Shown here one piece after another: positions 788-57,163 of a stretch of 64,000 nt of DNA. The notes below the pieces were generated by a model, which worked only from the letters and a program-made list of their open reading frames with translations, had not been told where the DNA came from and made no database searches. This DNA is from Bugula neritina. Lineage: Eukaryota; Animalia; Bryozoa. Position 1 is the first letter of the stretch. The number at the start of each line of letters is the position of its first letter. Both the position numbers and the translations under genes were made by a program. The stretch lies in NCBI GenBank assembly GCA_964035545.1, contig OZ037766.1, forward strand, positions 4,454,722 through 4,518,721, read 5' to 3'.

Positions 788-928
788 CGTAGTACTGTTC
801 GCCCTGCATCTTCCTCATATAACAGTGTATCAACACTATTAGCAAGATGAGGAAAAGAACTCCCCCAGCAATACCAATGATGAGTGCATACGGCACTGGG
901 GGCGGCGGAGGAGGGGGAGCAGGCGGAG
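788..928 (-). CDS. Anchor exon TM-2 of copy A (poly-Pro stalk + TM)
   Basis: tttgtag|CT...TACG|gtagag, 141 nt, phase 1-1: TPPAPPPPPPPVPYALIIGIAGGVLFLILLIVLIHCYMRKMQGEQYY. Confidence 0.85.
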
Positions 929-3900
929 CTACAAATAGCAACGAGAATATTACAGCTAGAAGACAATCTATATCTTACCATAGTACTGCTCGCCCTTGTT
1001 TTTCTGCACATAACAATTTATCAACACAATGAGCAGAATTAGAAAGAGGAGACCGCCAATTGCTCCAAAAATCAGGGGGTAGTGAGCAAATCCAGCCGTG
1101 GTCGGTGCAGCGGCTGGCTCTACAAGACATACAATGATCTACATACTTGTACGGACAATGCAATGGTTACAGTGTAGTGTCTCACAATATTACAGAGAAA
1201 AGACGCATGAGCTGACAGGCTGTTGAAGTGTTAGAAACCTGCTATAAAATCCATGTGAAGGCAATAAGCTGAGCCTCAAGAACAAATGAAGCTAAAATGT
1301 ATATTTTTGTCATGACAGGTAAAACAAACAGTAGTCTCAGGTCCCTGGTTGAGGGATGGGGGTAGCAAGACACCCTACTTACTATCAGCGAGATCAAAGA
1401 GCACGGGATCACTTTGAATTGTCTTAGTAAAATCCCCAAAAAGAGAATAGGTAACCACGCAGTGCCACTTGCTCGCCCTCAGGTTACGGGCGTTATCACT
1501 GCCATCAGGATCAAGAGAGAGTGACATCCTTATTACTCCATTATTATTTGGAGATATATCTACGGCCTAAAACAAATATAATTCTATAATCACTACGACC
1601 ACAGCCTCAATTTACAACTGCTCAGCATAGTTTCCACATGGCTATTTGTAGATGCTCTTGTTATGATTGGCTCAGGGCTAAAATTTGAAAGTTTAGGGAC
1701 ACATGTGGCCCTGGGGTCTTCAGTTTGACAACCTGGGCCCAATTTTCTCAGCAAAATGTGCTGTTAATGGCTGTGGCATAGTCAAAGGTTGGTATTTGCT
1801 ACTTTTTGGAGAAAAAATTAGATAGAGATGAAAAAAGTTTTAATTTATGTTTGAAACCACTTGATGTAATTGGTTTAATCAGTTCACCAAACAGACTGTA
1901 CCGCTCAGAAGTGTGAATACATGGAAACAGTCGGTTCAAGAAAACAACCTCAAGTATTACAGCCTTCACAAATGTTGATGAACTTCACTGACGATGAGTT
2001 ATTGGGAACAGGTAGCAAAGTGGTGATTATAAACAGTGTGCAATTTACAATGATTTTAGCAATTTAGTAAAAGAGCAGATGCATCTGATAGTTTTGGGAT
2101 TTCTAACCAACAATAAATAACACAGAATACCCACCTTAACACCAACACCATCTTCCTCTTTGATCTGTGCATCAGACTTATTTGACATCCAATAAGCTTC
2201 CTCCACAACTGCATTGCTGTCCAGAGTGACCGTACACAGGAAGTTGAAAGTATTTGTGGAGTTGAGGTCTTCCTTATAAACAATATAGGGGTCGGAAGCC
2301 AGAGGCGTCTGGTCAAGAACTGCTTCATCTACAGTAAAAAAAATAACCTCAACACTGGAACGATGAGTTCATAGCCATAGTTACGTAGTCTACTACTATA
2401 AGTGTGGCAACCAAAATTTACGGAACCCAATTTTCCCCTAGACGTCATAACAGAAGGTAACTGCGCCACTTCACACTAAATGAAATCATTTTTACCTGAT
2501 TTTATGAAAATATATGCTTTCATTGCCTTAAACTAACTAAACATTAGCAAATAAATGACAACATTCAGGCGTCTTTCAAATATTCCAACATCTACTATGT
2601 TTTTATATAAAATTAGTACATTTTGGGTACCTGCATTTTTGTTTAGAAATAACAGGTTTAATGTTAAAAATATTTTCCTTAGCCTTTTTTCTTATGTACA
2701 CATTTAGACTTGGCAAATGAAAGTACCTCAAATAGCATTTTTATGAGTTTTGACCCAAATGAACTTTTTGCCCTAATCTTCCAGTGTGTAGTAAATAAAT
2801 TAAATTGACCCAATTAGGATTATAGCAGTGAAATGGTAGAAAACGTCACTTCTATCAGATTTGTAGCTATGCACCTACCATAGATGGTCAGGTCTGAGGT
2901 CTCATACAGAGTGCCAGCATCATTGGTGGCTACGCAGAGTATACTACCAGACATGTTCTTCTGGGCTTCCTCAATGGTAAACTTGGTGTCCATGGTCGAG
3001 TCAAGTTTTATCCACGAAGGTGTACCTAAATACAAGCCAATAGAACTGTAGAGTACAAGATGAAGCTAGTAAATACTGTTTCAATGGGGCAAAAGTCATG
3101 TTGGAACATACTCTGCTAGATGTATACATACCTTCCACAATCTTTTGACCATTGAAGTAAAACTCTGTAGAAAAAGAGGCTCCATTTTCAGCATCGCAAA
3201 CCACCTCAACATCTGAACCAGTTGGTTCATAACGATTTCGAGCAAACTTTGATCTATCAGTCAGTTTAGGATATAGCTGAACTTTTACCTAGTAATGAAC
3301 AGTGCATCATATCATATTCTACACTAAACAGTGCTCATGAACAAGCGTTGATTTACTTGTACAAGCTTTTATTTTACTTTTACTTACTTTACTTTTTATA
3401 AAAACAACACTTTAGTAAAGTTGAGAATTGTCAAGCAGTTAGTCTTACTATCCAGACATTGAGCTAGAGAAATTAAAACATCTTTCAACAGAGAAGGTTC
3501 TCTGTGAATCTAAAACTTTCAATAGACCTTTTCAAAGCTCCCCAATCTTCAATTAAGAGTTTTCTCCTCCGAAAAAAGATTATTGTTGAACAAAATAAAC
3601 TTTTGAATGCACTTTTGTGGTTTTGCCTTCTGAGCTGCTGGCTGCTGCTTTAGCATTGCTCAGTAACCACAACAACAAAACTGCTTTCAAGTTTATTTTC
3701 TTTAAAACTTATCACAAAGAAATGTTTTCAAAATTTATGTTGAACTGCCAATATTTGTATTAATACCAAAATATCTATCTCCTAAAAGAACAATTCTATA
3801 GCATAATTAGAATGTTGAGTAGCAGCCAAACCTTAAATTTTTAATGAGTTTGTTCTTTATACAAAGTTTCAACCTATTCACTTTGGGAGGACGCAACTCT

Positions 3901-6900
3901 TAATTGTAAAGAGGATATCAGGACCTCTGAAAAGGGTCAATTTACTCTCTTCAACCAACAGCTAATGAGTGTAGTTCCACTCCCTATATACTGACTGCTT
4001 AAAGGCGTACTTTTAACATTTATAACATGGCACATGTCATAAATGTTAAATAATTAGTGGCTATAGGCACCAGCAGCATAATAATTATATCCTAATTTTC
4101 AGCGACTAAACATATTAATTGCTCATCACAATAATATGCTGAAGCTGTGTCCTTTACACTCCCATTAGATCTCCAGAGTTCAGTTGCTGATTAAAAATAC
4201 TAAATTGTGAAATGTTCATTACCTCTTCCAATTAGTCACCAAGAACTAAAAATGCAGCATCAATTCCAGCTGCCAACCAAAAGTATGGAGGCAAGATCTG
4301 ACCCTATACTGTACTATAGCTAGGTCATCAGTGTAGATATAATGTACATAGTTGTATGCAGTTGGCTTTACTTACAGTAAACACCAAAGTAGCAATAGTA
4401 GCCAATGAGGTCTGGTTATACACCTCGCACTGCCACGTCTCCTGCTCGATACGCAATGGCAAGAAGATATAATTAAATTTTCCATTTGTGGAATCAGAAG
4501 TCGAGGCATCATCTGGTCGTCTCCACCTCACCTTCCCTTCTCTGCCGGCTCTAAAACATGTCAACAGGTGATTCTTGAGAAATCGGTTTGGCAGCGATTA
4601 TCGAAAATAGCTACAGCGATTAAGTGCTCACCTCGGCCTGACTAAAATCAGTTCTTTACATAAAAACTGGTTAAAGTTGATCGTAAGCAATCAGTCTATG
4701 GGAATAGAAAATAAATTGGACTGAGCATTTAAACACTGGTGAAGGTAAAAAGTGTTACCAACTAGAAAAGGTGATAATTACTGCTGGTGATGAATAACCT
4801 AAACCATTGTCAACTTCCCAAGAAGATAAAATGATAGACATAGCTGTAGAAATATTTTACACTTTCAAGTCTTTCATTGTAGAACATAAAACCTTTCTAC
4901 AGACTTTTACAGTTGCTCAATGTTCATAAATAGCAAACAAAGTTGTTACTGCAACACATGTCTACCGTAACAGAAAGTTTGAAAAAACCAACTTCACCGA
5001 GTTCATTCTCTGAGAACCTGTACGCCTTGATCTTTCAGATAACAGTAGACAGTAGATATCAATGAATCTGGTATAGAGATACAGATACACACTTACAGTC
5101 CCCCAAAGATGCATACAAGTTCACACGGCACACCCTCTTGGCAAATGATTTCCGTGTTGACACCATGTGCCATAGAGCCATGTTGATTCATTGTCAGATC
5201 AGACTCCTTCGGGTCTAAATAGGCGATTGCAGGGATGGCCTCACTACTCGATCCAACAAGCAATGTGACCCTATTTGCAAGTAATGCAGCATTGTCAATT
5301 GACAGCGTGCACCGGTACTCAGCCCTGCCTGTTCGCTTGTCCGAATCCAACAGATAGGCAAAAAACAACTCGCCTAAAACAGAATATAAATTGTAATTTT
5401 TCATATTCAATTTCAACATGGAAGAATCAGAAAAATTTCTTAATAAAGTATTTTCAGCTGACTAGAAAATTGAAAGCAAGTCAAGATGCTATTTGATGAA
5501 TAGAAAGAAACATTGTGAACACAATTACAAAGTTTTTCCTAAGTGGCAGCAATCCAAAAATCCCATGCCAAGGATACTGTAAACCCTATACAAATTACAG
5601 TATCTGCATACACACTATCAGAAAAAGAAAGACAGCATCTACTTTCTCACCAGTAATGGGGTTGACTTTGATTCGGTTTAAATTGTCTGCGCTGTCAAAG
5701 TTCAGATTTGTAAAAACGCCAGCATCTGTCCCTACTTCCCATTTGAATTGAGGAATTTCTAGAGAAATTTCTAGAGAAATTTCGCGTGTATACTGTGCAA
5801 GGTCTTCGGGCTCTGGAACTGCCCTGTCATCTACGGTGTCTGGCAAAATGCATGGAATTGAGAATGGCTGATTCAGTTCAGGACTTCCTACAGCGGCACT
5901 CGCCAGAACTGCACCTCCCAACTTTTTTGGATCTACAGCAAGAAGGCAAATATATTACTTTCAGAGAATTATAGTTTTTTCATAACACCCTGCAATCAAA
6001 AGTTGCTGAATAATTAGGAAAAACCTGGGAAATCAAGCAAAATTAAGAAGAACCTTATTTATTTAGGTGTATCCATTCATATTTTACTAGTTTTGGGCAA
6101 AAACCCATGTTCATTAGCAGCTAAATTGCAAAAAATAGCTAAAAACTGGAGATTTCCAGTGTGTACTAAATTAAGTCAAGTGACCCAAATTCAGTGGGTA
6201 AAAAAATGTGAAAAGCTGACAAGTGAGATCTTGTACGAAGATTGCATAGCATTCAGGGAAAAGAGCTTTTTACAGCTCAAATAAAAGTTAGAAGACAGTA
6301 CAACAAAAGTGCCCAAATAAATCATCCAGTAAAAGTAAAGCTCTAAATGAAAAATGCGTTCATTTAAATAATGCAAGCAGCTTTGTCATGTGCATATATT
6401 AATGTTGCCATAGTAATTTAAATTTTTTATGAAAAAAAACATATCAAAGTAATCTTAAATCAAATTTTGAACAGTAAATTAAGTTTTCCATTCATCAATT
6501 TAATAAAAAATAATTTACCAAAAATTTCAAATTTATAAATATGAATTGCTCACTTTCAATATTATCTTTGTTACTGGTTACATGACTTATAAAGATAATA
6601 TTACAATTTCACAGATAAATCTTGGGATAAAACAGGGCTTGTTATTTCTCAATATACTTTACAATATACTTTATCAAAACAATTTTCTCATCCAGTAGGT
6701 CTAATGCAGTAATATGTGGAAACACCAGTAAGGGAGCAATTTCTCAACATATACAGCATTTTGCATTTCACAATGCTGCTTCTGAAAACTTTCATTCAGA
6801 TTGAAATTTTCACTACAATATCATACATCATTATTGAAAATTATCACTGTACAAAGTATAAACAATGATACAACTTACATGGCAAAATAACTCTAAACGT

Positions 6901-7946
6901 TGCTGACAATGTTTCAAACTTTCCACCGTTGTTAGAAGCCACACATCTGTAGTAGCCATTCATTGGTTTTAAATCATCCAACTGTCGAGTATTTCCGTCA
7001 TCGATGGTCAGTTCTTGCTCAGTGGTTGATATCCGGATTGGAGTGCCAACCCAGAGAGAGGGCAATGTATCACTGAATGGATCTGTACTGGTTTCAGCAT
7101 ATTGAAACTTCAGAGTCTCCACATTGCTGGCACGGCACGTCATTTTATTGACTATATCTACACTATCAGCTGCCTGGGCCACCTGTACATAGTCAGCTGG
7201 ATCTTTCAGCTCCTTGTCAACAAAAAAGTGAGTGCCAAGATAGTCAATACTGGGAGCTTTGTCTTCTATCTGTCCTCTAGCTGTAACAAATTGAAAACTC
7301 TTGACTATAGAAATTAGGCACTAGCACTATGAACAGCGTACAGTGGTCAAAATGAGTTAACAAATTCCTAACTTATTGGATTTATAGGAAAAGGTGGTAA
7401 ACCTTGAATTATGAAAGTTATTTGAAAATTTAATGCAAAGCTACACTGTATAAACAAAATTAAATTCCCAATTCTGGTGGTACTTAGAAGACATCAAACA
7501 ACAAATGAATTTAAATGAAATAAAGAAATATTATTTTTAAATACGTTTCATTTGGTAAATAGGATATCAAATGTCAATAGCAGGTCAAATGACCGATACT
7601 TATCTAAATACGGATGCCAAGACTATTTTCTGAAAACCAAACCTTTACATGCGTTCATAAAACAACCAGCACAGCATTTGGTTTTTCAGGCGTTTAGTTT
7701 GTAAGATACAACATTAGCATAATTTGCTTTTTCCAATAAAGCATCGAGTTCATATTCACGGATTTCCAACTGCTGGTGAGCCAATAAATCTAAACTAGTT
7801 TTAATTAACTTCACAAATTGCTGTAAGCTGCTATACTAGACACATTTCCCATGAGAACTATGATCCTAGCAACAACATTATAAACTATACTTACCTCCAC
7901 TAAGGAGTGTTAGCACAAAGAGACAGGTCTTTAAACTTGCCACCAT
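788..7946 (-). CDS. IgSF cell-surface receptor, copy A (signal peptide + 5 Ig-like domains + two alternative TM exons; L1/neuroglian-like, no FN3); tail exon not found in window
   Basis: Exons (minus): 7946-7895 (MVASLKTCLFVLTLLSG), 7304-6879, 5932-5651, 5373-5097, 4550-4376, 3288-3132, 3025-2879, 2328-2135, 1566-1383, then 1119-979 or 928-788. All GT-AG with compatible phases (1,1,1,2,0,1,1,0,1); about 678 aa open through the TM exon. Ig-type motifs: MTCRAS..NGYYRCVASN, FSIPC..TGELFFAYL..EYRC, LVCIFGG..VRW..WQCEV, VVCDAE..SGSILCVATNDAG, FLC..YW..WHC. The juxtamembrane KMQGEQYY resembles L1-family GGKY. Confidence 0.85.
979..1119 (-). CDS. Anchor exon TM-1 of copy A (not in the ORF track)
   Basis: gtcttgtag|AG...TATG|gtaag, 141 nt, phase 1-1: KPAAAPTTAGFAHYPLIFGAIGGLLFLILLIVLINCYVQKNKGEQYY. 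Paralogous to exon 928-788 and the same length. Confidence 0.8.
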
Positions 7947-10805
7947 TTTTTTCTTATAAAACTATACAATAACCAGTCTAAAAACAACATAATTTTGTTT
8001 AGGAATTTGAGCACACAACAGTTTTCTACAAGGCCTGGGCTTAAAAGAACAGATTTACAAAAATCAAAGGTACTAGGCTATACCTGGAATAGAGTATTGC
8101 AATAACTTATATTACCTAAATTTACCAAGCTCGATGTAGCCTAAATGTGCACCATTAGCATTAACAGTCCATTTTGCCATACTCAGATAAGTTCAAATTC
8201 ATACTAGTACTATTATTTAACAAAACTTTGAGTTGATGCCACCTAATAAAATATACACCTTAAATGCATATCAAGTCCATCTTGACCTTTTTATTTTCAA
8301 TTTCTTTTTTACATTAACACTAGCTTTTGGGTTAGTGCTTTAGGAAGTTAACTTGGTGAGGAATGGACGCAGACAGCACATAAGTAAGTAGTAGCTTAGT
8401 CTGCTATGGTCGGGTGGATATCCACTCCATGACTAGAATTTTTTGTAAATTGGATGCTGGGTGTTGAATAAATAGAGTGGTACTATAAGGAGGTGGGCTA
8501 CAAGTTACCAACTTTCCCCAGACTAACAACTACCAACGTGTGAGAATTATAGGTGAAATTCCTGTTGGGTGTGGAAGACAGGCTTCTAGATGGATATAAG
8601 AGCAAATGATTATTTAACAGCTATCAGATTTGACCTTTGAGTGTTTAACACACTATATAATATGGGTGAGTAAACAACTAGGTTTTTGTTCGCATGATTC
8701 ATGTCTATTCATAAAGTCAAATCATCTGCATATAATGTGCTTTGTTCACTTATCCAGCCAGATCTTATGCCATTTAAGTAACTATTACGAAAGACTAGGC
8801 AAATATTGTAGTACACTGATGCAAGGCATACTGTAAAAAGAGTATGACAACACGCTTCACAACAAAAAGAGAAATCATTTGTCTTGAATAAACTGACCCA
8901 GTTTACGGTAATTGTAATGTTCTCTGTAATTTAATTTGGCTCTAAGATAAGCAGCTGTGAGTGACATGTACTTCCGGGGTTAGCTGACAGTTCGATCAAA
9001 GTATATTTCAGTCAACTAGTATTGCCTTTTACAACAACTTGTGGTGTGTAGAAGATGACCCATCAATGTGTAAAGATAAGATAGGGAATTAGAAATGGTG
9101 GGTTACAACAAGCTGAGCGCATTACCTTATGTGTATTAGCAGAATAAATTCGATGGGTGTGAACAATTCATAAAGAATAAAAAAACATGGTTTTCATAAA
9201 TCATTTTCGATAGTTGACCAACTACTACTAGTACGTTACGTGTAGCTTAGTAGCACATCTTGCTGCTATTGCTGCTGCTAAGTTTGTATTCCTTCCAAGT
9301 TTGATGATCTCATTAAACTCATCATAATATTTGTAAGCAAATAGCCAATTTCAACCACCAAACACTTTATTCCGAATTAATTGGCTGAGTTAGAGACCGG
9401 AATTAGGTCAACACGCCGGCAGACCACCAACATGCTGCTGAGCTAGTCAAGCCTCATCTACAATCTATTTACCCACTCGAACTTACCATAGTTATCTTAC
9501 ATTTACCATTTAGCAGCTAGCAAGAGCTCTCCCTACATAACGAGATTTTAATAACTTATTATATCAGCCTGCATATAATGTTATAATGAAACAGCGAACT
9601 ATTCAATACTTTAGGCTTGGCAGTTAGCGTAGTGTATTGCTTTTATAGTCACAGTCACAGTCACAATAAAGCTGGTTAATGGCGCACGCACGCTTATCTA
9701 AGTAGGTTATGGCAGTTACTCCGTTAGAATTAAAGTTGTATATAGCACACTAACCTTGTTTGAATGGTCCCCGTACACAAATAAAAATGTAATCCAAGCT
9801 GGCAACGCGATATGCAGTAGGTCAGAGCTAGTAGCAAGGGGGATTACACAAGAGCAATGAGTTTAACAATTATGAGAGTAAGCTAGTAGTTATTTGGGAC
9901 AATGATAACGACCTAGTTCACTGATCACTCAATTACTGTAATTATGTTGAAGTCCGTAATCCAACTTATTGTACCTAGGCCGTGCCCCCTCACCTAACGA
10001 GCTATAAATGAGTAAGCTTGGAATACCGCGTTCGATCAACATGAAACAATGTAAGTACGCCATAAAAATATTGACTCATGACCCGTATTTCAATACAGCA
10101 CTAGAAGATAAATAGCACACCCGGTGATTCATTCAATCACGATGCATCATCAACCAATAAGGGAAAACAAATGCTGAACAAATGAATAAATTATAATAAC
10201 ACTCCAGTTGTAGTATCAAACCACTGATTAACTTCTTTTGTTGAAACTGTTACAGGAAGAATACTCTGTACATAGACACACCTCATTAGAACTACAGGGC
10301 TGAGTGAAGCTACTTTACAGCCATTACTGACTAAACAACAGTTTCAACTGTCAACAGGAAATACCACTATTATGAAAGTTTTACATGATTTCTCAAAAAT
10401 TACGAAATTATGTCATAAGCCAAAAATGTCACTTTAGTTAAAAACAGGAAAGTTTCAAGCTAACACAGTAAAACCCAAAGGATTACTTCTATAAAACATA
10501 CTTGGCGATGAATATAATTGAATATAAGGTATTGACTCCAAAAGTTAGCATTCAGGTCAGTGAGCATTTTCAGCTTCAACAGTCATTTCTATTAATAAAT
10601 TTTCTTTTAGAACGTAGCAAGACGAGATAAACAAATAACAAGTGTAAATGCATAGAAACCCAAGAACTAATTTAGAAAAATCTTCGTGCTTATTTAAAAA
10701 TTATTCTACAATATAAATTTGATAACCAAAATTGTGATACTTTAAAATAGTAAAGAATAAAGATTCCAGTCAGGGAAAGAAGGTAAATACTGCAACTTAC
10801 AGTGG

Positions 10806-10888
<83 letters not shown>
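10806..10888. repeat. (CA)n/(TA)n microsatellite
   Basis: Directly visible. Confidence 0.95.
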
Positions 10889-10889
<1 letters not shown>

Positions 10890-13189: not shown

Positions 13190-14310
13190 GACGGATGGAG
13201 TTGTCTACACAATACAAATTGCTTTCGCCAGGAGTACTTGTACACTCTCCCATTTGATAATAATAGTAACCGAATACGTTATGCGCGTTTTTCAGAATTC
13301 GATAGAAACAGCATTACGTTGGGAAGTAACTAAGTGCAACGTCTGAATAGACATTCACCGGCTTTCCATGTACCGATCTCAGATCGATCTCGGCGAGATC
13401 GATTCATGGAAAGACGCCAAAGATCGATCTCCATCGTTCTGAGCTGGTCGGTCTGTGGAGCTCGAACTCAGATCGATCTCATGTCAATAAGACCATGGAA
13501 AGACGCCAGATCGATCTGAGAAGTAGAAAAAGACTGCTCGCTACAATGTTGTCTGCTAATAAAAATGATAACTTGTTGATAATTACTAAGCAAAGTATTA
13601 AATAATTATGATAGCCATCTTTTCAGATGCCAAAACTTTGACTTTCAGCACAATGATTAAGAAAACTTAATTATATGCAGTAGAAGGCAAAAAAATAGGA
13701 GAATTTAAATTAAATTTAAATGACTATTAAAACTTAGTTTCATTGGCTATTTTCTTTGTAATTTTAAGCCTAACAGTCCTGTAAGTTTATTAATAATCTG
13801 CAAGACAGCTATTAATTTTATATAAGCTGTCTAGCTAAAAAATTAAAATTAATTATTTTAAATTGGCCAAATTACTGTACCCTGAAAGCTTTGCTGCGTA
13901 TATTTTATAGCTGGGATTAAATTTTAGACTACTACCATCTTGTTTTCAACAGTAGTAGCTTTAATCACTCAAATAGGTAAACAAAATATACTTTTCAAGT
14001 ATCCTTCACTTAAGAGGAGGCAACTTCGCGAGATCGATCTGACACTCTCATGGAAAAACGATCGATCTGAGTACATTTCTCAGATCGATCTCAGCGAGAT
14101 CGATCTGAGATCGGTACATGGAAAGCCCGTGATTATTATTTGAACTATAAACAAGAACCAGTGCACTCAATGACCACTAACGCGGTGCTGCCTCAAGTAA
14201 CTGCGGTATTTCACATCTCTAGAACTGCAACAACAAATTTTCCAGACAGCTTACCATCAAACTCAATAATATTTCCAGCTCAGTGTAGCTTACATGGTTT
14301 CGACCAGTGT
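13190..14310. repeat. Old dispersed repeat, interrupted by the MITE; related copy at ~60180-60445
   Basis: Shared blocks ggagtt(g/a)tcta(c/t)acaata, gtacactctcc(c)atttgat, cggtgctgcctcaag and cttac(a/g)tggtttcga occur in the same order at both loci. Boundaries approximate. Confidence 0.5.
13356..14131. mobile_element. MITE family 1, copy 1 (776 bp)
   Basis: Long TIRs CACCGGCTTTCCATGTACCGATCTCAGATCGATCTCG / CGAGATCGATCTGAGATCGGTACATGGAAAGCCCGTG, 3-bp TSD ATT, subterminal GATCGATCT and CATGGAAA repeats. Near-identical to 58245-59019. Confidence 0.93.
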
Positions 14311-41600: not shown

Positions 41601-44600
41601 CTGCTCTGATTTACTCCCCAGAGGCGGCAAAGGTCGCTCATCAGTTGAGACTGGAATTGAGCGCCTTGATCAGAGTGTATCTGTTCGGGGAGCCCAAAAT
41701 AACAGAATACATGTTGGTCTAGTGCCCTGGCCACTGTTGGGGCTGATGCATCTGGGATAGCCAGAGCATCCGCCCACCTAGTAAAGTGGTCGGTTAATAC
41801 TAGGATCCAATTGTTGCCTCTGGGGGTCAGGGGCATGGGTCCGACCAGGTCTACAGCGACTACTTGCCAGGGCCTACCAGCGTATAGCCTCCGCCGTCCT
41901 GCTTCACCAGGGGGGCGGCTATGCTTACTGGCCTGGCAGATCTCACACTGTTTGACTCTGAGCCGGACATCACGCTCCATTTGTGGCCAATACCACCGAA
42001 GTCGTAATTTGGACATCACTCGCTTGACCCCTGCGTGGGCCTGTTTGTGAGTATCCCAAATCAACTCACGGCGGATGGCTGTGGGGCAGACTACCCTCTT
42101 CCTTTCCGGGTGTCTGCCGCTGGCAGCTAGAGAGATGGTTAGCAACCCATCCTGCCCGATCCGCAGCGAGTCCCAACGCTGACAGTATAGCCGGAATTCG
42201 GCGCATCCCTGCCGTATGCGTTCCTCGCTGGGTCGTCGCCCTTCCCTTTTGGCCCGGTATATGTCTGCCACGACTCCAGGCAGCTCTTCTTGGAGCTTTT
42301 TCAGCTCTCGAACATTACCGGCCAGTACAGGGTTGGCGCGGAGGTTTTGTACATCCTCCGGGGACTCATCAACTCTTTGCCTGAGTTGACCTTGATCCCA
42401 GTCAAACGGTGCTCCGTGGTGAGCCAGCGTCTCCAACTCGCATCGCGGGGGACCTCCATCCCTCCTCTCGATGTTGAGACACTGTTTGCAACCTCCGTCA
42501 GGTCGGCGACTCAACCCATCCGCATTGCTGTGTCTCTTGCCCGGTCGATGTTCGATCCGGTATGAGAATTCAGCTAGGATTTCGAGCCACCGGGCGACCT
42601 GACTAGAGGGCTCTGCTCTCCTGCACAACCAGATCAGCGAGGCATGATCCGTACACAGCCGGAACTTCCTGCCATATAGGTATGGTCTGAAGTGCTTCAC
42701 TGACTTGATTACTGCCAGCAGCTCCTTGCGGGTAGTGCAGTAATTTCGTTCAGCGGGTGAGAGAGACTTGCTGTAGTAGGCTACTACTACCTCTCGGCCT
42801 TCCTGCACTTGTGACAGCACAGCGCCAACATTTTGGTCACTGGCGTCCGTGTCTAGGATGTACTCCAGAGTGGGGTCTGGGTAGGCCAAGATGGGCGCCG
42901 TTAGTAGGCAGCCCTTGAGGCGGTCGAACGCTTCTTGTTCGACTGGAGTCCACTGCCACGTCACTCCCTTTGCGGTGAGCCGGTTTAACGGCTGGGCTAT
43001 GCCCGCAAAGTCTGGTGTGTATTGCCTGTAATACCCTACCAGCCCCAAGAAAGCCCGGAGTCCGGTCAAGTCTTGGGGGGTGACCCAGTCTTCTACTGCC
43101 CGTACCTTTTCGGGATCCGTTGCCACGCCGTTTCGACCGACAACGTGTCCCAGGTACTTGACCTCCGGCTGCAATAGAGCGCACTTGGAAGGTTTGAGCT
43201 TGAGACCGGCACCTCGGAGTCTCTCGAAAACCTCCTGCAGACGACTGACATGTGTCTCGAAGTCTGGAGAGATTACGATGACATCATCGAGGTAGACCAG
43301 CAGTGTCTTCCAATGGAGTCCGCTAAGGACTTGTTCCATCAGCCTCTGGAAGGTGGCTGGGGCGGAGGTTAACCCGAAGGGCAGCACCTTCCACTTCCAC
43401 AAACCGTCCCGTGTGATAAACGCCGCCTTCTCTTGGGCGTCGGGACTCAGAGGAACCTGCCAATAGCCGCTTAGCAAGTCTAACGTACTGAAGTACTTGC
43501 TGCCGGCTAGGGCGTCCAATGACTCGTCAATACGAGGTAGAGGGTAGGCGTCCTGTATGGTGACGCTATTGAGTTTGCGGTAGTCCACACAGAACCGCCA
43601 ACTGCCGTCTTTCTTCCGGACCAGTACGACTGGCGAGCTCCACGCACTATGGGCGGGCTCTATCAGTCCCCGGTCCAGAAGATCCCGTACTTGTCGGCTA
43701 ACCTCCTTCTCTTTCTCCGGCCCCAGCCTGCGTGTGGGCTGCCGGACAGGGACTGTCCCTGCAGTCAGCGGTATTTCGTGTCTGACAATTCCAGTCAGTC
43801 CCACGTCATGCTCTCCGCTGCTGAACACATCACCGTAGTCGCGTAGTAACTTAGCCATAGCTTGGCGTTCTCTGTTACTCGCGCAGCCGCCACTGGCTGT
43901 TTCGTATAACTCCCGGAGATGTGTTGGGACTGCCCCTCGTCCCTGAATAGGGCACTGAGGGAGTGCCTCTGTCGCATCACCCAGCGACGGGCCTACGTCT
44001 CCCTCTTGAACAGAGTGGAAACGGCCCAGCATCGACCCAGCCGGGAGCTTGATAGGCTCGGTAAAGAGGTTGACGCACTGCACTAAGATCTCCCCTTGCT
44101 CAGTCAGCTGATTCAGACTGCTGGCAAGTTGGATCTTTTCGTGCGCGCCTTCAACCACCCCGAGTCCAGAGATCCGGCTACTATTCACCCTGCAGTGAAT
44201 GGTAGCCCGGGAGCGGCCTGGTATGATACGGTTGCGTATCACTTGCACACCTCCCACTAAAGGGCGGCCGAACTTGTCGACGCAGGCGAGTTCCCGCCCG
44301 GACATCATCATTGCAGATCTGCTAAAATCTATGTGACATCCGTGCCGTTTAAGGAACGGCATCCCGAGGATAGCATCCTCCTTGAGCTGACTGACGATGA
44401 ACGTCTCTTGGATCGTTTGATCACGGACTCGTCCCGTCAGCTCAATTATACCATAGAAGGGAAGGCACGACCCGTCAGCTAGGGTGCCGTATTCCCCTTC
44501 GTATGCTTCCATCTCGCCCCTGACCCTAGCACTGAGGGTGTCGAAGAGTTGGCGGCTTAAGAGGTTTGTGGTACAGCCCGAATCAATGAGGAAAGTAACA

Positions 44601-47274: not shown

Positions 47275-49746
47275 TTTCTTCTTATAAAACTATACAATAA
47301 CCAGTCTAAAAACAAATAATATTGTTTAGGAATATGAGCACACAACAGGTTTTCTACAAAGTCTGAGCTTAAAAGAACAGATTTACAAAAACCAAAGGTA
47401 CTAGGCTATAGCTGGAATACAATATTGCATTAACTTATATTACCTAAATTTACCCAAACTTGATGTAGCCTAAATGTGCACCATTAGGATTAGCAGTCCA
47501 TTTTGCCATACTCAGATAGGTACAAATTCATACTAGTACTATTATTTAGCAAAACTCTGAGTTGATGCCACCTAATAAACGTCTTAATTGCCCACTAAGT
47601 CGTCCTATTTTTTTCTATTTTCAATTGTTTTACATATAAAATCTAACTTTCAGTGCTTTAGAAAGTTAACTTGGTGAGAAATAAAAACAGACAGCACATA
47701 AATAAGTAACTAGTAACTTAGCCTACTAGTAGCAAACTTCAGGTCGGGTAGCTTTATAGCCAGTCCATGACTAGAATATTTTGTGAGTTGGGTGTTGAAT
47801 AAACAAATAAAATGATACTATAAGAAAAGGACGGCTACATGCAAGTTACCAACTTTCTTCAGACTACTAAAGTGTGGGAATTATAAGTAAAACTCTTGTT
47901 GGGTGTTGAAGACAGGCTTCTAGATAGACGTAAGGGTAAATGATTATTTAACAGCCATTAGACTAGTTTTTTGAGTGCTTAACACACCATATAATATGAG
48001 TGAGTAAACAATAAGGTTTTTGTTCGTATGATTCATGTGTATTCATATTGTCAAATCATCTATATATAATGTACTTTGTTCACTTATCCAGCCAGATTTT
48101 ATGCTATTTAAGTAACTATTATAAAACACCAGGCAAATTTTTCATAACACTGGTGCAAGGGTACTGTAGAAAGGGTATGACAACACAATTCAAAACAAAA
48201 AGAGAGATCAATTATCTCAATTGAACTGACTCAGTTTATGGTTATTGTAATGTAATTCAATTTGGCTCTAAGATAAGCATCAGTGAATGACAAGTATTTC
48301 CGGGTTAGCTAACAGTTTGACTAAAATAGATTTTAGCTGACTAATTTTGTCTTCTACAATAGCTTAGTCTCTTACCACGTTATGCATTTATTGCAATTGT
48401 AACAATTGTGCTCCAATAAATATATTTTGATAATTTAACTAAAAACCCAGATAGCCTTTCAGCTGTTGGCATTCACTGTTCATGTATTCGTGTTACTGTT
48501 TTGTTATTTCTTAATATTATGGCTGCAGCTTGTACCATTTAGGAGCAGTAGTGGAAAAATTGAGTATAACCTAAGTTCTTCAAATTTCTTTATGAATTTT
48601 GGTGTTGTGTATAACATAACTTCTTTTGCTACATTTCTAATCTAGAACACAGGCTTTTCTCAATTTCTCCATTACTGCACCTACCTCTTGTGTAGTAGTC
48701 ATCTCCGTCAGCTGCAGTAGACTCAAGATCCTAGTTATTGTAGGTGGTAGGTTAGAAAATAGTTATAGAATGAAATAGTGTTATCAGGAATATGCAGTTT
48801 GGAGTTTTTGCAACTTACCGAATAATATAATTGGGTTGTAGCCTTCAGGTGAGCTGCGAGGTAACTCCAACTCCAGTCAGCCTGTAGAGGTGAAGTTGAG
48901 ACTCCGGGTTGGGGTATTTGTCCGTGGGTGCTCCGTCGTTGATGCTCCTAGGCTAGCACTCACTAATACACCTTAACAATTCTAGTCTATTCTGACTTAT
49001 ATAATATTATCTTCTTTCCACAACCTTCAATCGCTCCATTCACCCAATCTTCTCCCCATCTCTTTCATACACACTCTGCTTTATATCTCAACACTAGCAC
49101 AAGCCACACCCACACTATATGTATGTTGATGCAAATATCACAGAGTTGTGCACTTCATAAACACACAAGAGTAAAAGAAGACAACTACAACTAACTTACA
49201 AGTTCGGATACAACAATAGGTAAAAGGCTAAGCTAAGCTAATCACTACTGCACCTGAAAGCCCAATTTGGAATCTAATGAATCTTTATTATGGAAATATT
49301 GTTTCAAACAAGAATTATAAAAATTCAAATATATAAATATAATTCAATAATATAATTTGCAACAGCGAGTGTTAGTGGTAATAATATTAAAATAATGCTA
49401 AACAAAATACAAGTAAAAATCTATAAACTAATATTTTCTTGGGGTAATAAAATACACATATTTGAAATATATATAAGATTCAGAAGCAAAAGGAATCAAA
49501 ACTGATGGTGAAAAATAGTTCAATAAAACCTCAAAATTTGATGTTAATATGTGAATTGCCTTGACATTGCCGGTGTGCAACCAGCAAAACATGTTTCCTG
49601 ATTGCTATAATAATATGTTACGAATAATACAAAAATATACAATAATACAATGTATTTCTTACAATTGTCATCACTTCACTCATGAGCCATCAATTAAGCA
49701 GTTGCTTTAATATTAAGTAAACACTCCAATATATATATATAATATA

Positions 49747-52700
49747 CTAAAATAGGCATAAGTTAAATAGGTCAATTGTGGCTTTCCATACTATTTCTTC
49801 CTTGATGTTGACCTTCCTCTTCATTACATAGACTGTATAAGACAAGGCAAACATGTTTCTTAGAAGATGATAAATTGCACATGATTCAGTATATCATGTG
49901 ATAGGAGATGTTTGATTGAGAAGCAGTGTGCATTGCCAAACTAATATACCTGAAAGTTGAAAAATCAAAAAATATGACGTATATATACTCAGAGAGGCAT
50001 ACTTTTGCTTAGCTCAGTGAAACGAAAACCTAGGTGAACTAAAGTTATTCAGAAAAAACTGCAAATCCTCATCTCAAACAAGCGGCAGCTAATAGCTGAC
50101 TTAGGGTCACAATTCAACCGAAAAGAGTTTGTAGTCTTTTAATATTACTGAGACTTCTTACAGACTTCTGACATTACAACACTGCATACAGGGTTACCGG
50201 TATTTAGAGAAGCTGCTGCTTTACAATGGTTAGTGAGGGCATTAAAGTAAAAGCATATAAAGAGGAACTGAAAGGAGAACAGCAGAGAGAAGGTGTGAGA
50301 GGCACCCTAGTTATTCGTGTGAGTGGAGAGCAAGGAGCAATTACTCTACCGTAGTACTGTTCGCCCTGCATCTTCCTCATATAACAGTGTATCAACACTA
50401 TTAGCAAGATGAGGAAAAGAACTCCCCCAGCAATACCAATGATGAGTGCATACGGCACTGGGGTGGCGGAGACGGAGTAGCATAGGTGGAGCTACACATA
50501 GCAACGAGAATATTATGGCTAGAAGACAATCTATATCTTACCATATAATTGCTCTCTTTTGTTTTCCTGTACATAATATTTATCACCCAATGAGCAGAAT
50601 TAGAAAGAGGAACCAGTAGATTGCTCCAAAACTGAGAGGGTAGTGAGAAAATCCTGCATTGACTGCTCCTACAAGACATACAATGATCTACATACTTGTA
50701 CAAACAATGCAACGGCTACAGTGCAGTGTCTCACAATATTAAAGAGAAAGAAAACATGGGCTGGCAGGTTGTTGGGGTGTTAAAACCTGCTGTAAAATCC
50801 AGGTAAAAGCAATAAGCTGAGCCTCAAGAGCAAATGAAGTGCTAATGCATAATATTTTTGTGATGGCAAGTGAAATAAATAGTCTAAAACCATGTAGTTT
50901 CTTGGTTGGGGAGATAGAAAGACACCCGACTTACCCGTAACGATATCAAAGACCACAGGTTCGCTTTGAATTGTCTTAGTAAAATCCCCAAAAAGAGAAT
51001 AGGTAACCGCGCAGTGCCACTTGCTCGCCCTCAGGTTACGGGAGTTTTCACTGCCATTAGGATCAAGAGTAAGTGACATCATTAAATTCCCGTTAGTATT
51101 TGAAGATATAATTACGGACTAAAACAAATATAATTCTATAATCACTACTACCACAGCCTCAAATTGCAGCTGCTCAACATAATTTAAACATGGAGTTATT
51201 AATTCATTTATTTCACCAAACAAACCGTACATCCCAAAAGTGTAAAAACATAGAAAACAATTGGTCTAAGAGAACAAATTAAACAGATCTGTATCAACAA
51301 ACTTCCCAGAACAGGTAGAAAAGTAGTAATTATAATCAGTGTACAATTTATTTGTCGAGCAAGAAGACAACTTGGACAATGATTTTAGCAATTTAGTAAA
51401 AGAGCAAATACATCTAATAGCGTTAGGATTTCTAACAAACAATAAATAACACAGAATACTCACGGCAACACCAACATCATCCTCCTTTGTGATCTTTACA
51501 TCAGACTTATTTGACATCCAATAAGCTTCCTCCACAACTGCATTGCTGTCCAGAGTGACCGCACACACAAAGTTGAAGGTAGACTGCGTGTAGTTAAGGT
51601 TTTCTCTATGGATGATATAAGGCTGAGAAGGCAGAGGCGCCTGAAGGAAAACTGCTTCATCTACAGTACAACAAAATAATCTAGACTCAACACTGAACTG
51701 ATAGTACAAGGCCATAGTTACACCAGATGACATTTAAGATAAAATCATTTTTGCCCGATTTATGATAATCCAGATGCTAATATGTATTTTTCTCACACAT
51801 ATCTTAAATCAGCACATGAAAGTACCCCAAATAGCAATTTTATGAATTTTGAGCCAATCTCACTCTTTATAAAAATCTGCTGATGTGTACCTAATAAATT
51901 AGAATGACCCAATTAGGATTATGACAGTGGAATGAGGGAAAGATGTTACATCTCTCAGATTTATAGCTATTGCACCTACCATAGATTGTCAGGTCTGAGG
52001 TCTCATACAGAGCGCCAGCATCATTGGTGGCTACACAGAGTATACTACCAGACATGTTCTTCTGGGCTCCCTCAATGACAAACTTGGTGTCCATGGCTGA
52101 GTCGTAAGTTATCCACGAAGGTGTATCTAAATGCAAGCAAATAGAACTGTAGAGTACAAAATGAAGCTAGTAAATACTTTTTGAATGGGGCAAAGATCGT
52201 GTTTCAACAAACTCTGCTATATGTATACATACCTTCCGTAATCTTTTGACCATTGAAGTAAAACTCTGTTGCAAAGGCGACCCGATTTTCAGCATCACAA
52301 ACCACCTCAACATCTGAACCAGTTGGTTCATAACGATTTCGAGCGAACTTTGATCTATCAGTCACTTTAGGATATAGCTGAACTTTTACCTAGTAATGAA
52401 CAGTGCATCACATCATATTCTACACTCTACAGCACTCAGGAATAAGCTTTGATTTACTTGTACAAGCTTCTATTTTACTTTTGTAACAAGACACTATAGT
52501 AAAGTTGAGAACTGTCCAACAGTTGGTCTTACTATAAAGATAGTGAACTACATAAATTTAAATATCATCTGACATAGGATATTCTTCTACAGCTCTCAGT
52601 TTGCATTTATGATGAAACTTTGGCTATAAGATAAGTTTGACTTCATCCACAGCTAATGACTGTAGATAAAGTTCCTACATACAGAGACCAGGAAGTTCAT

Positions 52701-55700
52701 AGATCAAATTTATAACATGGCACTAAGGAAATAGTGGTTGTAGGCAGTAGCTTCATGAACATGATAACAATTATTTCATAAGTTAGTATTGATTGCTCAT
52801 CACAATAATTGTGAAATTGTACCATTCACAAGTCACAAGTCTTCAGAGTTCACTTGCTGAGTAAAATACTGATAATGGAAAAATACTGATTATCCCTTTG
52901 AAGGAGCCACTTGTCAACAGGAACAGAAAAGACAGCATTAATTTTAGCTGCCAACCAAAAGTATACTGCACTATAGTTAGCTCATCAGTGCAGATATAAT
53001 GTAGGCCTACATAGTTGTATGCAGTCGGCTTTACCTACATTAAACACCAGAGTAGCAATAGTAGCCAATGAGGTCTGGTTATACACCTCGCACTGCCACA
53101 TCTCTTGCGAGTTACTCGATGGTAAGAAGATATAATTAAATTTTCCATTTGTGGAATCAGAAGTCGAGGCATCACCTGGTCGTCTCCACCTCACCTTCCC
53201 TTCTCTGCCGGCTCTAAAACATGTCAACAAGTGATGCCTGAGTGATTATTGATAATAGGTATGTCAATTAAGTGATCACCTCGGCCTGACTACAATCAGT
53301 TCTTAACATAGAAACTAGTCGCAATGGATCGTTAGCAATCAGTGTATCTTCTCATTAACACTTGCCGTACTGTACGCCGTAACAGCAAATATCAGCCATT
53401 TTTACAAATGTCTGAGCTTCCTGCACAGCATTGCGGTACATTAGGATCAAGCACTGCTCCATTCAAACAAGTTTTAGCAGGCTCCAATTGGACAGAAAAA
53501 CTTTTGCGTCAACTCCTTGGATAAATTGTTCAATGAAGTGGCATAGAACGTATCTAATAGCGGACTTTGAAAACTTCAGCCCGGGCACATTAAAAATGGC
53601 TGATAGTTTACACGGTACGGCAAGTGTGAATAAGGGGTATGGAAAAAGAAAATAGATCTGGACTGCGCATTCAAACACGGATGAAGGTGAAAAGTGTTAC
53701 CAACCAGGAAAGGTATTATTACTGTTGATGTTAAACAACTTAATATATAATTGTCAATTTCTCCACGGGGTATTAACATATTGCAATGCATAAGTATAAA
53801 ATTACAATAAGTCAAGATAAAAAATATCCACAGCTGTAGAAATATTTTACACTTTTAAGTTCTTCATTCTAGAACATGGAACCTTAGATGTTTATAAATA
53901 GCAAACAAAGTTAGTTACTTCAACACAGTTTCACATCAACAAAAGCACACAATGTATTTTGAAGCTTTGAAAAAAACCAGCTTCAGTGAGTTCATCCTCT
54001 GAGAATCTGTAAGTATTAGTCCTTCAGATAACAGTAGATATCAATTAATCTGGTATAGAGATACAGGTACACACTTACAGTCCTCCAAAGATGCATACAA
54101 GTTCACATGGCACACCCTCTTGACAAATGATTTCAGTGTTGACACCATGTACCATAAAGCCATGTTGATTCATTGTCAGATCAGACTCCTTCGGGTCTAA
54201 ATAGGCATTTCTAGGGATTTCCTGATTACTTGATCCAACAAGCAATGTGACCCTATTTGCAAGTTCTGCAGCATTGTCAATTGACAGCGTGCAACGGTAC
54301 TCATCCCTGCCTGTCCGCTTGTCCGAATCCAACAGATAGGCAAAAAACAACTCGCCTAAAAGTGAATATAAATTGTAATTTTACATAATCAATTTCAACA
54401 TGGAAGAACCAGAAAAATTTCTTAATGAAGTATTTTCAGCTGACAAGAAAATTGAAAGCATGTCAAGATGCTATTTGATGAATCAAAAGAAGAAACATTG
54501 TGAACACAATTACAAAGCTTTTCCTAAGTGGCAGCAATCCAAAAATCCCATGCCAAGGATAAACCATGGACAAATTACAGTATCTGCATTCTGCATACAC
54601 ACTATCAGAAAAAAAAAGACAGCATCTACTTTCTCACCAGTAATGGGGTTGACTTTGATTCGGTTTAAATTGTCTGCGCTGTCAAAGTTCAGATTTGTAT
54701 AAATGCCATTTGTTGATGTTTCCCATTGGTATTCAGGAATTTCTAGAGCAATTTCGCCTGTATACCGTGCAAGGTCTTCGGGCTCTGGAACTGCCCTGTC
54801 ATCTACGGTGTCTGGCAAAATGCATGGAATTGAGAATGGCTGATTTAGGTCAGGGTTTCCTACAGTGGGAATCGCCAGAACTGCACTTCCCAACTTTTTT
54901 GGATCTACAGCAAGAAGGCAAAGATATTACTTTCAAACGTATTGAATGAAAGTAGGCACATTTAACAAGCATTGAATTAATACTAAATCAGTTAATTCAG
55001 ACCTAACAAAGTAAATATAAACATCCTACAGTTTGTGAGCAGAAAGTGGATAAAGATTCAGCGAGTAAATAAATGAGAAAAGCTGACAAGTGAGAGCTTG
55101 TACAAAGATTATGTAGCATTCAGGGAAAAGAGCATATTACTTTTACAACAGGCCTAACAAAAGCGAGAAGACAGTACAACAAAAGTGCCAAAGTTAAATC
55201 ATCTTGTAAAAGTAAAGTTCTAAATGAAAAATGTGGTCATTTGCATATATTAATGTTGCCATAGCAGTTTAAATTTATGAAAAAAAAATCACAGTATTCT
55301 TGATTCAAATTTGGAACAGTATTAAGTTTTTCATTTATAAATTCAATAAAAATTTACCAAAAATTTCCAACCTATAAACCTGAGTTGCTAACTTTCACTA
55401 TTGTAGTAGTTTTGTGGGTTATAGAATGAAATCAGGCAGAGAACATAACTCCTTGCTATGGAAAAGACAAGAGAGAAAGGTGACTTCGTGTGTGTATAGT
55501 GATCTTTATTGTAGCAAAGATGTATACAGCTCAGACTCCAGTCTTGAAGTGCTAAGCTGGGGAAAAACGCGTGCTTTTATACTGGCAAAAGACAGGAATG
55601 TGGGCCTTCCAGAATATTCTACCGACAGGGCGCCGACATTCGTCATGTCGGTAACCGACACTGGACATGTCGGCAACCGACATTGGGTCTGCCTGCACCC

Positions 55701-57163
55701 ACCTGCCGACATCGGTACATCTGTTTACAAGAATAAAGAAAAGAATCAACCCAGAGTATTATAATAAGTTATTGTTTGTAAAATAAAGGAAAAGGCAAAA
55801 CCAAACAAGTGTGTTATAATAACTGAGACTATAACTGTAATACTAGCCACTGGGACGAGGCAAGGGGGATAACTTGATATTTACTACACTATTACTATTA
55901 CTGGTTACATGACTTATAAAGATAAAATTACAATTTCACGGATAAATCTTGGTTTAAAACTGAGCTTGTGGTTTCTTAATTTACTTTTTCAAAACAATTT
56001 CCTCATTCAGTAGGTCTAATGCAGTAATATGTGACATTATGGAGTATGTGGAAACACTCGTAAGGGAGAAATTTCTCAACATATACAGCATGTGCATTCC
56101 ACAATGCTGCTTCTGAAAACTTTCACTCAAATTGAAATTTTGACTCCAATAATTGTATGTCATACATCATAATTGGAAATTATCATTGTATAAAGTATAA
56201 ACAATGATACATCTTACATGGCAAGATGACTCTAAACGTTGCTGACAATGTTTCAAACTTTCCACCATTGTTAGAAGCCACACATCTGTAGTAGCCGTTC
56301 ATTAGTTTCAAGTCATCCAACTGTCGAGTATCTCCATCAGTGATAGTCAGTTCTTGCACAGTGGTTGATATCCGGATTGGAGCACCAACCCAGAGAGAGG
56401 GCAATGTATCACTAAACGAACCTGCACTGGTTTCAGCATATTGAAACTTTAGAGTCTCCACATTGCTGGCACGGCACGTCATTTTATTTACTATATCTAC
56501 ACCATCGGCTACCTGGGCCACCTGTACATAGTCAGCTGGATCTTTCAGCTCTTTTTCAACAAAAAAAAAGTGAGTGCCAAGATAGTCAATACTGGGAGGT
56601 CTGTCTTCTATCTGTCCTCTAGCTGTAACAAATTGAAGACTCTTGACTATAGAAATTAGGCACTAGCACATTGAACAGCGTACAGTGGTCAAAATGAGTT
56701 AACAAATTCCTAACTTATTGGATTTAATGCAGAGGTGGTATACCTTGAATTATGAGATTAATTTGAAAATTTCATGTAAGGTTACACTGTATAAACAAAA
56801 AATAAATTCCCAATTCTGGTGGTACTTTGAAGATGTCACAGATATATTCAGTAATTATGCAATAACCAATAAATTTGGATGAAATAAGAAAATATGTTTT
56901 GTAACTACATTTCATTTGGTAAATAGGAAATCAAATATCAATAGCAGGTTAAATGACAGATACTTATCTAAATATGAATCTTATAAGAATTTGTGAAAAC
57001 CAAACCTTTGCATGCGTTTTTCACAAAGCAATCAGCATAGTATTTGCTTTTGCACAATTTTATTAAAAAAAGCAATAACCTTAGCAATAGTTTTATATTA
57101 CCTAAACTTACCCCCACTAATAAGTGTTAGCACAAAGAGACAGGTCTTTAAACTCGCCACCAT
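49747..57163 (-). CDS. IgSF receptor copy E (5 Ig; GPI-like isoform intact, TM-2 frameshifted)
   Basis: Exons 57163-57112, 56646-56218, 54904-54638, 54355-54079, 53213-53039, 52389-52233, 52126-51980, 51660-51464, 51118-50935, TM-1 50668-50583 (stop; 656 aa). TM-2 50491-50350 is 142 nt and out of frame; putative tail exon 49832-49747. Confidence 0.82.
53347..53637. mobile_element. MITE family 2, same site in copy E
   Basis: Same sequence and position as in B and D. Confidence 0.75.
55402..55888. mobile_element. Solo LTR (487 bp) in intron 2 of copy E
   Basis: TGTAGTA...TACTACA termini, TSD CTAT. Empty site in D (cactattactaatac). Confidence 0.82.

Follow-up and report, generated by a model that had tools for sequence, protein, structure and literature searches.

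In their textbook form, L1-type cell adhesion molecules are proteins with six immunoglobulin (Ig) domains and fibronectin type III (FN3) repeats, usually encoded in low copy, and their juxtamembrane pattern is GGKY-S/D-V; they bind ankyrin and adhere homophilically by means of a horseshoe made up of Ig1-4. The contactins are glycosylphosphatidylinositol (GPI)-anchored relatives of L1 which, in vertebrates, act as co-receptors with tailed L1-type proteins, and Drosophila Dscam1 has, at exon 17, two mutually exclusive transmembrane (TM) exons. Here we describe a tandem cluster of four genes, designated A, B, D-C and E, which on sequence grounds are L1-type and which lie in a 64,000-nucleotide window of the Bugula neritina genome (G000:C2:4454722-4518721; the genome comprises 216 Mb and all genome-wide searches cover it). 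The cluster probably represents, with a probability that we put at roughly 0.6, a lineage-specific tandem expansion of an unusual L1-type adhesion molecule that gained contactin-like, tail-less members.

The L1-type Ig cell adhesion molecules (IgCAMs) include L1CAM, neurofascin, NrCAM and CHL1, Drosophila neuroglian, C. elegans LAD-1/SAX-7 (PMC2196473) and leech tractin. Gene A resembles these in having a Bravo_FIGEY domain with the exact FIGQY ankyrin-binding motif, a juxtamembrane G-x-x-Y directly after the membrane span, a single-pass type I layout and N-terminal Ig domains with the Y-Y-R-C-x-A-S-N signature. Unlike the L1-type IgCAMs, which possess six Ig and three to five FN3 domains, the proteins described here have five Ig domains and zero FN3 domains, there are two tandem TM exons, the genes form a tandem cluster in which three of the four are cut off from the FIGQY tail, and the ectodomain alone is not recognised as L1 by sequence or fold searches.

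The FIGQY exon of gene A is located outside the window, about 3.1-3.4 kb below its start (minus strand, about -3358 to -3092, L007:6642-6908), contains the sequence NEDGSFIGQY and runs to the stop codon. It matches the Pfam family Bravo_FIGEY with an E value of 2e-13 (51.6 bits; curated cut-off 23.8), is the sole L1-specific signal and serves gene A alone. Contig C1 carries the only other Bravo_FIGEY exon of the genome, which makes two in total. Upstream of it, and also on the minus strand, gene A carries two tandem TM exons, TMa (979-1119) and TMb (788-928), each of 141 nt, phase 1/1 and in frame, and a 79-nt first cytoplasmic exon, cyt1 (about -278 to -356, L007:9640-9720). Both TM exons end with a basic stretch, GEQYY and then the donor site; TMb encodes a proline-rich stalk before the TM segment. 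The hydrophobic span followed by GEQYY is encoded by both TM exons of A and by TMb of B and, in A, VDENERK comes next, at the beginning of cyt1. GEQYY plus VDENERK fits the general juxtamembrane pattern of L1 given above.

TMa and TMb of gene A are most likely mutually exclusive, because they are equal in length and phase and because the inclusion of both would give two membrane spans. As in Dscam1 exon 17, an Ig adhesion molecule here has two adjacent alternative exons for its membrane span and juxtamembrane segment; unlike Dscam1, exclusivity is here deduced from length and phase, and one of the alternatives bears a stop in three paralogs.

The gene on contig C1 (G000:C1:16243160-16255946, L013-L014) is a single-copy paralog that follows the plan of gene A exon for exon, including the shared exon for the 3' half of Ig2 and the 5' half of Ig3 (Ig2b/3a), with five Ig domains, no FN3 repeats, only one TM exon, cyt1 and a FIGQY exon. 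Its first tail exon is 81% and its FIGQY exon 65% identical to those of gene A. Both FIGQY-bearing genes in this genome are five-Ig and FN3-free. The tails of both also end in -DV, a possible PDZ ligand.

Self-comparison of the window revealed five paralogous cassettes with 82-94% nucleotide identity, all on the minus strand, as are all of the exons listed below: A (644-9034), B (16091-25262), C (27100-33006), D (33009-38737 and 46248-48359, the two parts separated by a retrotransposon) and E (50206-57313). The exons of cassette A were delimited by open frames together with splice phase and consensus AG/GT sites, and the copies in the other cassettes were aligned to them exon by exon; homology searches, fold predictions and the sums for the ratio of nonsynonymous to synonymous substitutions (dN/dS) were all run exon by exon. 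There are eight Ig-coding exons per cassette. AG/GT is retained at all boundaries of the 8 x 5 exons, stop codons are found in 0 of the 40 and every insertion or deletion is a multiple of three. Each cassette encodes five Ig units with the Cys...Trp/Phe...Cys pattern. Ig1 is a single exon, the 3' half of Ig2 and the 5' half of Ig3 lie together in one exon, and the other Ig units are each split in two. The frame is continuous from the signal peptide to the TM exon and is filled by the five Cys-Trp-Cys units, which makes five Ig domains and not the six typical of L1. No FN3 repeats were found in gene A, where the TM exon follows Ig5b after an intron of 264 nt and no conserved open frame is left over.

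In A, B, D and E, Ig1 is preceded at a distance of about 600 nt by a conserved 52-nt coding exon 1, which holds the ATG, encodes a hydrophobic leader of 17 residues and ends in a GTAAGT donor of phase 1; position 57163 is the ATG of gene E. This signal-peptide exon, missed by a cruder signal-peptide screen, was found by aligning the upstream regions of the cassettes, an alignment in which cassette C has none. D and C share one reading frame, therefore the five cassettes make four genes. The first-pass annotation of the window, made from the letters alone, had proposed L1-like receptors with five ectodomain cassettes in which all frames and splice phases are intact, a reduced FN3 content, a variable number of Ig domains (five or ten) and alternative anchors. 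Its structural description proved exact to the base: 40/40 exons are open with all splice sites kept, FN3 repeats are absent, the five- and ten-Ig forms follow from the splice phases, the alternative anchors are real at the sequence level, and the L1-like character is borne out by the FIGQY exon and juxtamembrane motif of gene A.

Inside the window, gene A (788-7946) comprises the signal-peptide exon, the eight exons that encode its five Ig domains and both tandem TM exons, and the gene extends below the window start. Its exons up to Ig5b are exon 1 (7895-7946), Ig1 (6879-7280), Ig2a (5651-5932), Ig2b/3a (5097-5373), Ig3b (4376-4550), Ig4a (3132-3288), Ig4b (2879-3025), Ig5a (2135-2328) and Ig5b (1383-1566). 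Gene B (15637-24185) has its own signal-peptide exon (24134-24185) and five Ig domains, encoded by Ig1 (22442-22843), Ig2a (21216-21482), Ig2b/3a (20665-20938), Ig3b (19588-19762), Ig4a (18808-18964), Ig4b (18555-18701), Ig5a (17613-17806) and Ig5b (16826-17009), followed by a TMa cut short by a double stop, a TMb that is in frame and a terminal tail exon that has degenerated. Gene E (49749-57163) likewise has its own signal-peptide exon (57112-57163) and five Ig domains, from Ig1 (56218-56622), Ig2a (54638-54904), Ig2b/3a (54079-54355), Ig3b (53039-53213), Ig4a (52233-52389), Ig4b (51980-52126), Ig5a (51464-51660) and Ig5b (50935-51118), and ends with a stop-bearing TMa, a frame-shifted TMb and a terminal tail exon.

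In gene D-C (26646-47274), the signal-peptide exon and five Ig domains of D are fused in phase to the five Ig domains of C, giving ten, and the anchor exons of C follow. The D exons are exon 1 (47223-47274), Ig1 (46357-46758), Ig2a (37693-37959), Ig2b/3a (37124-37400), Ig3b (36068-36242), Ig4a (35241-35397), Ig4b (34988-35134), Ig5a (34044-34237) and Ig5b (33255-33438); those of C are Ig1 (32450-32851), Ig2a (31222-31488), Ig2b/3a (30652-30928), Ig3b (29966-30140), Ig4a (29159-29315), Ig4b (28906-29052), Ig5a (28385-28581) and Ig5b (27839-28022). The breakpoint is at 33006-33009 (minus strand), where homology to the Ig5b-TMa intron on the D side meets homology to intron 1 on the C side and the alignment ends; cassette C homology begins 150 nt upstream of C Ig1, where the Ig5b-TM intron homology of D stops. 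The deletion removed the TM and tail exons of D and exon 1 of C, and the intron that remains is a hybrid about 400 nt long; no TM exons are found in cassette D on alignment with the other cassettes. The Ig5b donor of D and the Ig1 acceptor of C are both phase 1, which therefore yields a ten-Ig reading frame.

The anchor exons of B, C and E differ from those of gene A. The same 1-nt deletion is present in TMa of B (16423-16551), C (27437-27565) and E (50542-50668) and produces TGA TAA immediately after the hydrophobic segment. These exons read small residues (N-A-G), a spacer of about seven residues, about 15 hydrophobic residues and the double stop, with no tail, and are a putative GPI-attachment signal or tail-less end. 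TMb is 141 nt in A and 138 nt in B (16235-16372), both in frame, whereas it is 143 nt in C (27244-27386) and 142 nt in E (50350-50491) and unreadable if spliced from Ig5b. The 3' 125 nt of TMb are 97-99% identical in all copies, compared with approximately 86-94% for the flanking introns. TMb of B has a Gly-to-Glu change within the membrane span (16289-16300) in an exon that is otherwise conserved. The terminal exon, cyt1' (B, 15637-15720; C, 26646-26729; E, 49749-49832), is a diverged copy of the first tail exon that has lost its donor and closes after 28 codons; ATTAAA/AATAAA signals follow, for B at 15601 and 15176.

Because B, C and E have donor-less cyt1' exons and TMa stops, the ankyrin-binding tail appears to be reachable by gene A only, which would be the main functional split within the family and was not brought out in the first-pass annotation. 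Gene B is predicted to make either a GPI-type form or a short-tailed TM form, and D-C and E only the GPI-type form. The arrangement is like that of the contactins in that tail-less, putatively lipid-anchored proteins (B, D-C and E) stand beside a tailed L1-type protein. Unlike the contactins, which are ancient and dispersed and have six Ig and four FN3 domains, the tail-less forms here are recent and local, with five or ten Ig domains and no FN3 repeats, and their putative GPI anchor would have arisen through a 1-nt deletion in a duplicated TM exon.

A search of the whole genome with Ig1 returned the five copies in the window (90-100% identity) and then only two distant relatives, on contigs C7 (33%) and C1 (25%), so that exactly five close copies exist, all in the window. 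A word search of 5.8 billion proteins found only three genomic open reading frames (ORFs), from one JGI sample, and an exhaustive search of 1.84 billion proteins gave no named close relative, only unnamed exon-sized ORFs with 30-40% identity and the same Ig1 donor position. These results agree with a lineage-specific local expansion, as had been proposed from the window alone.

Metagenome contigs of JGI sample 3300002729 bear the label AY690838, the accession under which GenBank lists the mitochondrial genome of B. neritina (PMC2678162). They match the window at 85-92% identity and therefore derive from a related lineage and not the same strain. They hold the upstream region of A (91%), the D-C fusion (86.8%) and a third copy, with all exons open; these exons are about equidistant from all five cassettes, with dN < dS. 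One contig, L019, spans the fusion breakpoint, being colinear with 34158-32136 (86.8% identity), and its exons are open to either side. The presence of the fusion in an independent metagenome contig shows that it is not an artefact of assembly. A scan of metagenome contigs gave no further copies, though records near this genome may be left out there.

Single exons match Pfam I-set and Ig_2 below threshold (best E value, 2.5e-4 for I-set), because the domains are split and diverged. An Ig1 profile matched Robo2 (1.4e-8) and contactin-4 (5e-6) in the PDB, and the AlphaFold model of Ig1 is a beta sandwich (pLDDT 79) whose best Foldseek neighbour is Ig1 of Unc5D. Together, the phmmer and profile searches of the PDB and Foldseek return generic members of the Ig superfamily (Robo2, contactin-4, Unc5D and antibody domains). 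The expected Ig fold was thus recovered, weakly and at the level of exons, and a family placement of the ectodomain was not. Neither the protein searches nor a search of the literature gave a description of a five-Ig, FN3-free L1-type family, in line with the first-pass annotation, which did not recognise the cluster as a described family; as judged from sequence, a tandem family of this kind with tail-less members matches none.

Transcription was assessed from RNA sequencing contigs of run X1 (labelled "symbiont metagenome"; the only RNA run with the locus), mapped over 27301-33300, which give neither expression levels nor transcript ends. The contigs sit on the predicted exons, and intron-only bins have zero or very little depth beside exon bins. 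Two joints, 30140 to 30652 (Ig2b/3a to Ig3b) and 28022 to 28385/8 (Ig5a to Ig5b), agree with the predicted junctions to the base. A loose end at 32450 runs on into the first 12 bases of Ig2a, TMa of C has contig coverage over 27466-27532, a contig ending in a TMa variant has TCT as its next bases, as at the beginning of cyt1' and not as in intron or TMb, and another contig (loose end at 27372) carries the 5' end of a B-type TMb exon. As 127 contigs are at least 99% alike to cassette C, this cassette or a near-identical allele is transcribed; that it is transcribed though it has no first exon indirectly favours a D-C transcript. The locus is thus not a silent one.

Summed over exons, pairwise dN/dS among the five cassettes is 0.30-0.53 at dS 0.13-0.21, and values for single exons range from 0.24 (Ig4a) to 0.73 (Ig5b). 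Variable columns number 153 of 602 residues, 35 of the 602 having three or more states. They are clustered, with 98 adjacent variable columns against 69.8 +/- 7.2 after shuffling (0 of 5,000 shuffles reached 98); such patches include the six residues that follow the first Cys in Ig4, and a stretch of Ig2 in which A also has a 4-residue duplication. Which paralog is nearest depends on the part of the cassette: B groups with C and D with E in the 5' third, and the pairs in the 3' third are C-E (95-97%) and B-D. To judge from the alignments, the copies are therefore mosaics from unequal exchange or conversion, and self-comparison also reveals a 6.3-kb two-cassette segment duplicated at 92.5%. The mosaic ancestry asserted in the first-pass annotation is consequently upheld. 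Of the localised hypervariability, the localisation stands and the prefix does not, given the modest number of variable columns. Diversification in the sense of positive selection finds no counterpart in these values, as no exon exceeds 0.73, and the sequence comparisons fit a constrained functional adhesion family better than a diversifying receptor system.

We propose that the ancestral form, kept in gene A and the C1 paralog, would have had a signal peptide, five Ig domains, no FN3 repeats, one membrane span and a FIGQY tail, gene A additionally having two tandem TM exons that are probably mutually exclusive. A duplication truncated just past the first cytoplasmic exon would have created a tail-less derivative, which would then have been re-duplicated and shuffled by unequal exchange or gene conversion to give B, D-C and E. 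The shared 1-nt deletion would have turned TM exon a into a hydrophobic C-terminus with a double stop, a presumed GPI signal or tail-less anchor, the leftover tail exon without donor would end the gene in B, D-C and E, and a deletion would have joined D to C into a ten-Ig gene. Gene A would couple adhesion to the ankyrin/spectrin skeleton, and B, D-C and E, uncoupled from that skeleton, would serve as partners, co-receptors or ligands, with slightly different loop surfaces and with differences in length and anchor. This division of roles is one that we infer from the known biology of L1 and contactins.

Several observations weigh against this explanation. Membership of the L1 type rests on the tail of gene A, because the ectodomain by itself is generic for the Ig superfamily. 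In neither the C2 nor the C1 gene does the phase-2 end of cyt1 fit the only plausible acceptor of the FIGQY exon, which is phase 1, and the exon of 3n+2 nt needed between them was not found by conservation with C1 or by enumeration of candidates; if such an exon were optional, its skipping would shift the frame and the ankyrin motif would be lost. The anchor types of B, D-C and E are ones that we infer from sequence, and the frame-shifted TMb of C and E, near-identical to the in-frame copies, is unexplained by the model; gene conversion or use as a 3' untranslated exon is possible. A young, apparently intact, sense-orientation retrotransposon in an intron of D may disturb the expression of D-C. 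The RNA contigs are short (60-140 nt) and about half are only 95-99% alike, and therefore not assignable to single paralogs; among those mapped over 27301-33300, no read crosses the D-C junction or joins TMb to a tail exon.

Some of these same features would also fit B, D-C and E being young, decaying duplicates without a function of their own, their transcription incidental, which would leave gene A and the C1 paralog as the only members of consequence. C and E have a frame-shifted TMb, cyt1' is degenerate and lacks a donor, TMb of B has a Glu in the membrane span, a 7.5-kb retrotransposon occupies the D intron and C is without a promoter or first exon. However, at dS 0.13-0.21 all 32 Ig exons of B, C, D and E are open with all splice sites kept, dN/dS among these four is 0.30-0.48, the fusion and further open-exon copies persist in a lineage that is about 9-13% diverged, and the RNA coverage of cassette C is confined to exons, with the 127 closely matching contigs. 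We therefore consider such decay unlikely.

The first-pass annotation favoured a recognition system and, developed in full, this would be a polymorphic locus for allorecognition, kin recognition or immunity in which each paralog or allele has a distinct binding specificity. In its favour, the animal is probably colonial, the copies stand in tandem, substitutions fall in short patches, several of them beside conserved cysteines, the copies are mosaics as in segment-exchanging loci and the anchors alternate. Invertebrate allorecognition loci such as Alr and the Botryllus fuhc region are marked by extreme polymorphism of their alleles, from which fusion or rejection can be predicted. As in the Hydractinia Alr complex, this is a tandem Ig superfamily cluster in a colonial invertebrate; unlike Alr, which has tens of genes and extremely polymorphic allodeterminants (PMC9546547), it comprises four genes under purifying selection, one of them with an L1-type cytoskeletal tail. 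That tail is a cytoskeletal linker and not a signalling domain, there are only four genes with modest variation, dN/dS is below 1 for every exon and pair, the five copies agree in 75% of residue columns and the structure of the locus is conserved in the related lineage. A recognition system thus appears to lack positive support in the sequences and we regard it as improbable. Still less probable is a specific version in which this small set of four genes encodes the identity of cells or colonies at their surface, loop patches of paralogs or alleles on a five- or ten-Ig L1-type scaffold giving homophilic specificities; were it true, the choice of anchor among two TM exons, a GPI-type end and a tail with or without a link to ankyrin would set whether contact is read as adhesion or merely displayed, and segment exchange between cassettes would keep producing new combinations.

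The locus might finally be one unit of the protocadherin or sDscam type, with variable 5' cassettes spliced to the single FIGQY tail or with read-through isoforms of five, ten or 15 Ig domains. Chelicerate sDscam and the clustered protocadherins of vertebrates (PMC4835542) share with it tandem adhesion cassettes with their own first exons and shortened relatives of a classical neuronal adhesion molecule, but unlike those systems, which have tens of cassettes and shared constant exons, it has four genes with their own terminal exons and no sign of sharing. In its favour, the four TM-bearing cassettes have a single FIGQY exon between them, all TM exons keep a donor, TMb is conserved at 97-99%, and all cassette ends are phase 1, the D-C fusion showing that concatenation is tolerated; this reading is nevertheless very improbable, since B, C and E each have their own donor-less terminal cyt1' followed by poly(A)-type signals and a double stop in TMa, TMb is out of frame in C and E, the TMb donor of B would need to skip all acceptors of cassette A, and the sole RNA loose end after TMa fits cyt1' and not a distant exon. 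A FIGQY tail shared by all TM exons in protocadherin fashion was dropped owing to the donor-less cyt1' exons and the TMa stops.

The retrotransposon in the D Ig1-Ig2a intron is a Ty3/gypsy long terminal repeat (LTR) element of 7.5 kb (38737-46246, minus strand) that runs in the gene's own direction. A single mismatch separates its 307-bp LTRs, the target site is duplicated over 4 bp (CAGC), and the frames for gag (317 residues) and pol (1348 residues) are open, alongside two further ORFs (196 and 267 residues). Its GC content is 52-57% against about 35% around it, and corresponds to the 52-57% GC block at 40-46 kb in a window that is otherwise about 35% GC. A related element extends from L016:9555 to about L017:6200, adjoining the distant Ig1 relative on contig C7. 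A 782-bp repeat with 98% identity, probably a mobile element, is present at 13355-14136 and 58244-59024, the second copy breaking the conserved upstream region of gene E. A 198-residue open frame at 61134-61730 (minus strand) resembles the C-terminal part of a non-LTR retrotransposon reverse transcriptase, with no significant Pfam match. The next gene downstream of gene A is Mff-like and has minus-strand orientation, and a gene for a DYRK-like kinase lies on the plus strand (L004, 20-10 kb below the window start).

As a candidate for immunity or allorecognition the locus carries lesser weight, as no measurement points to diversifying selection. As an expansion of an L1-type adhesion molecule, the local family would display a stepwise change from a tailed adhesion receptor to a tail-less, probably lipid-anchored one, by way of TM exon duplication, a single-base deletion that places a stop after a hydrophobic stretch and the loss of a donor in the exon that follows. 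The family also includes two neighbouring genes fused in phase, with a double-length ectodomain that persists in a second lineage. The cluster may thus provide a natural model for the transition from L1-type to contactin-type molecules and for changes of domain number in Ig superfamily proteins.

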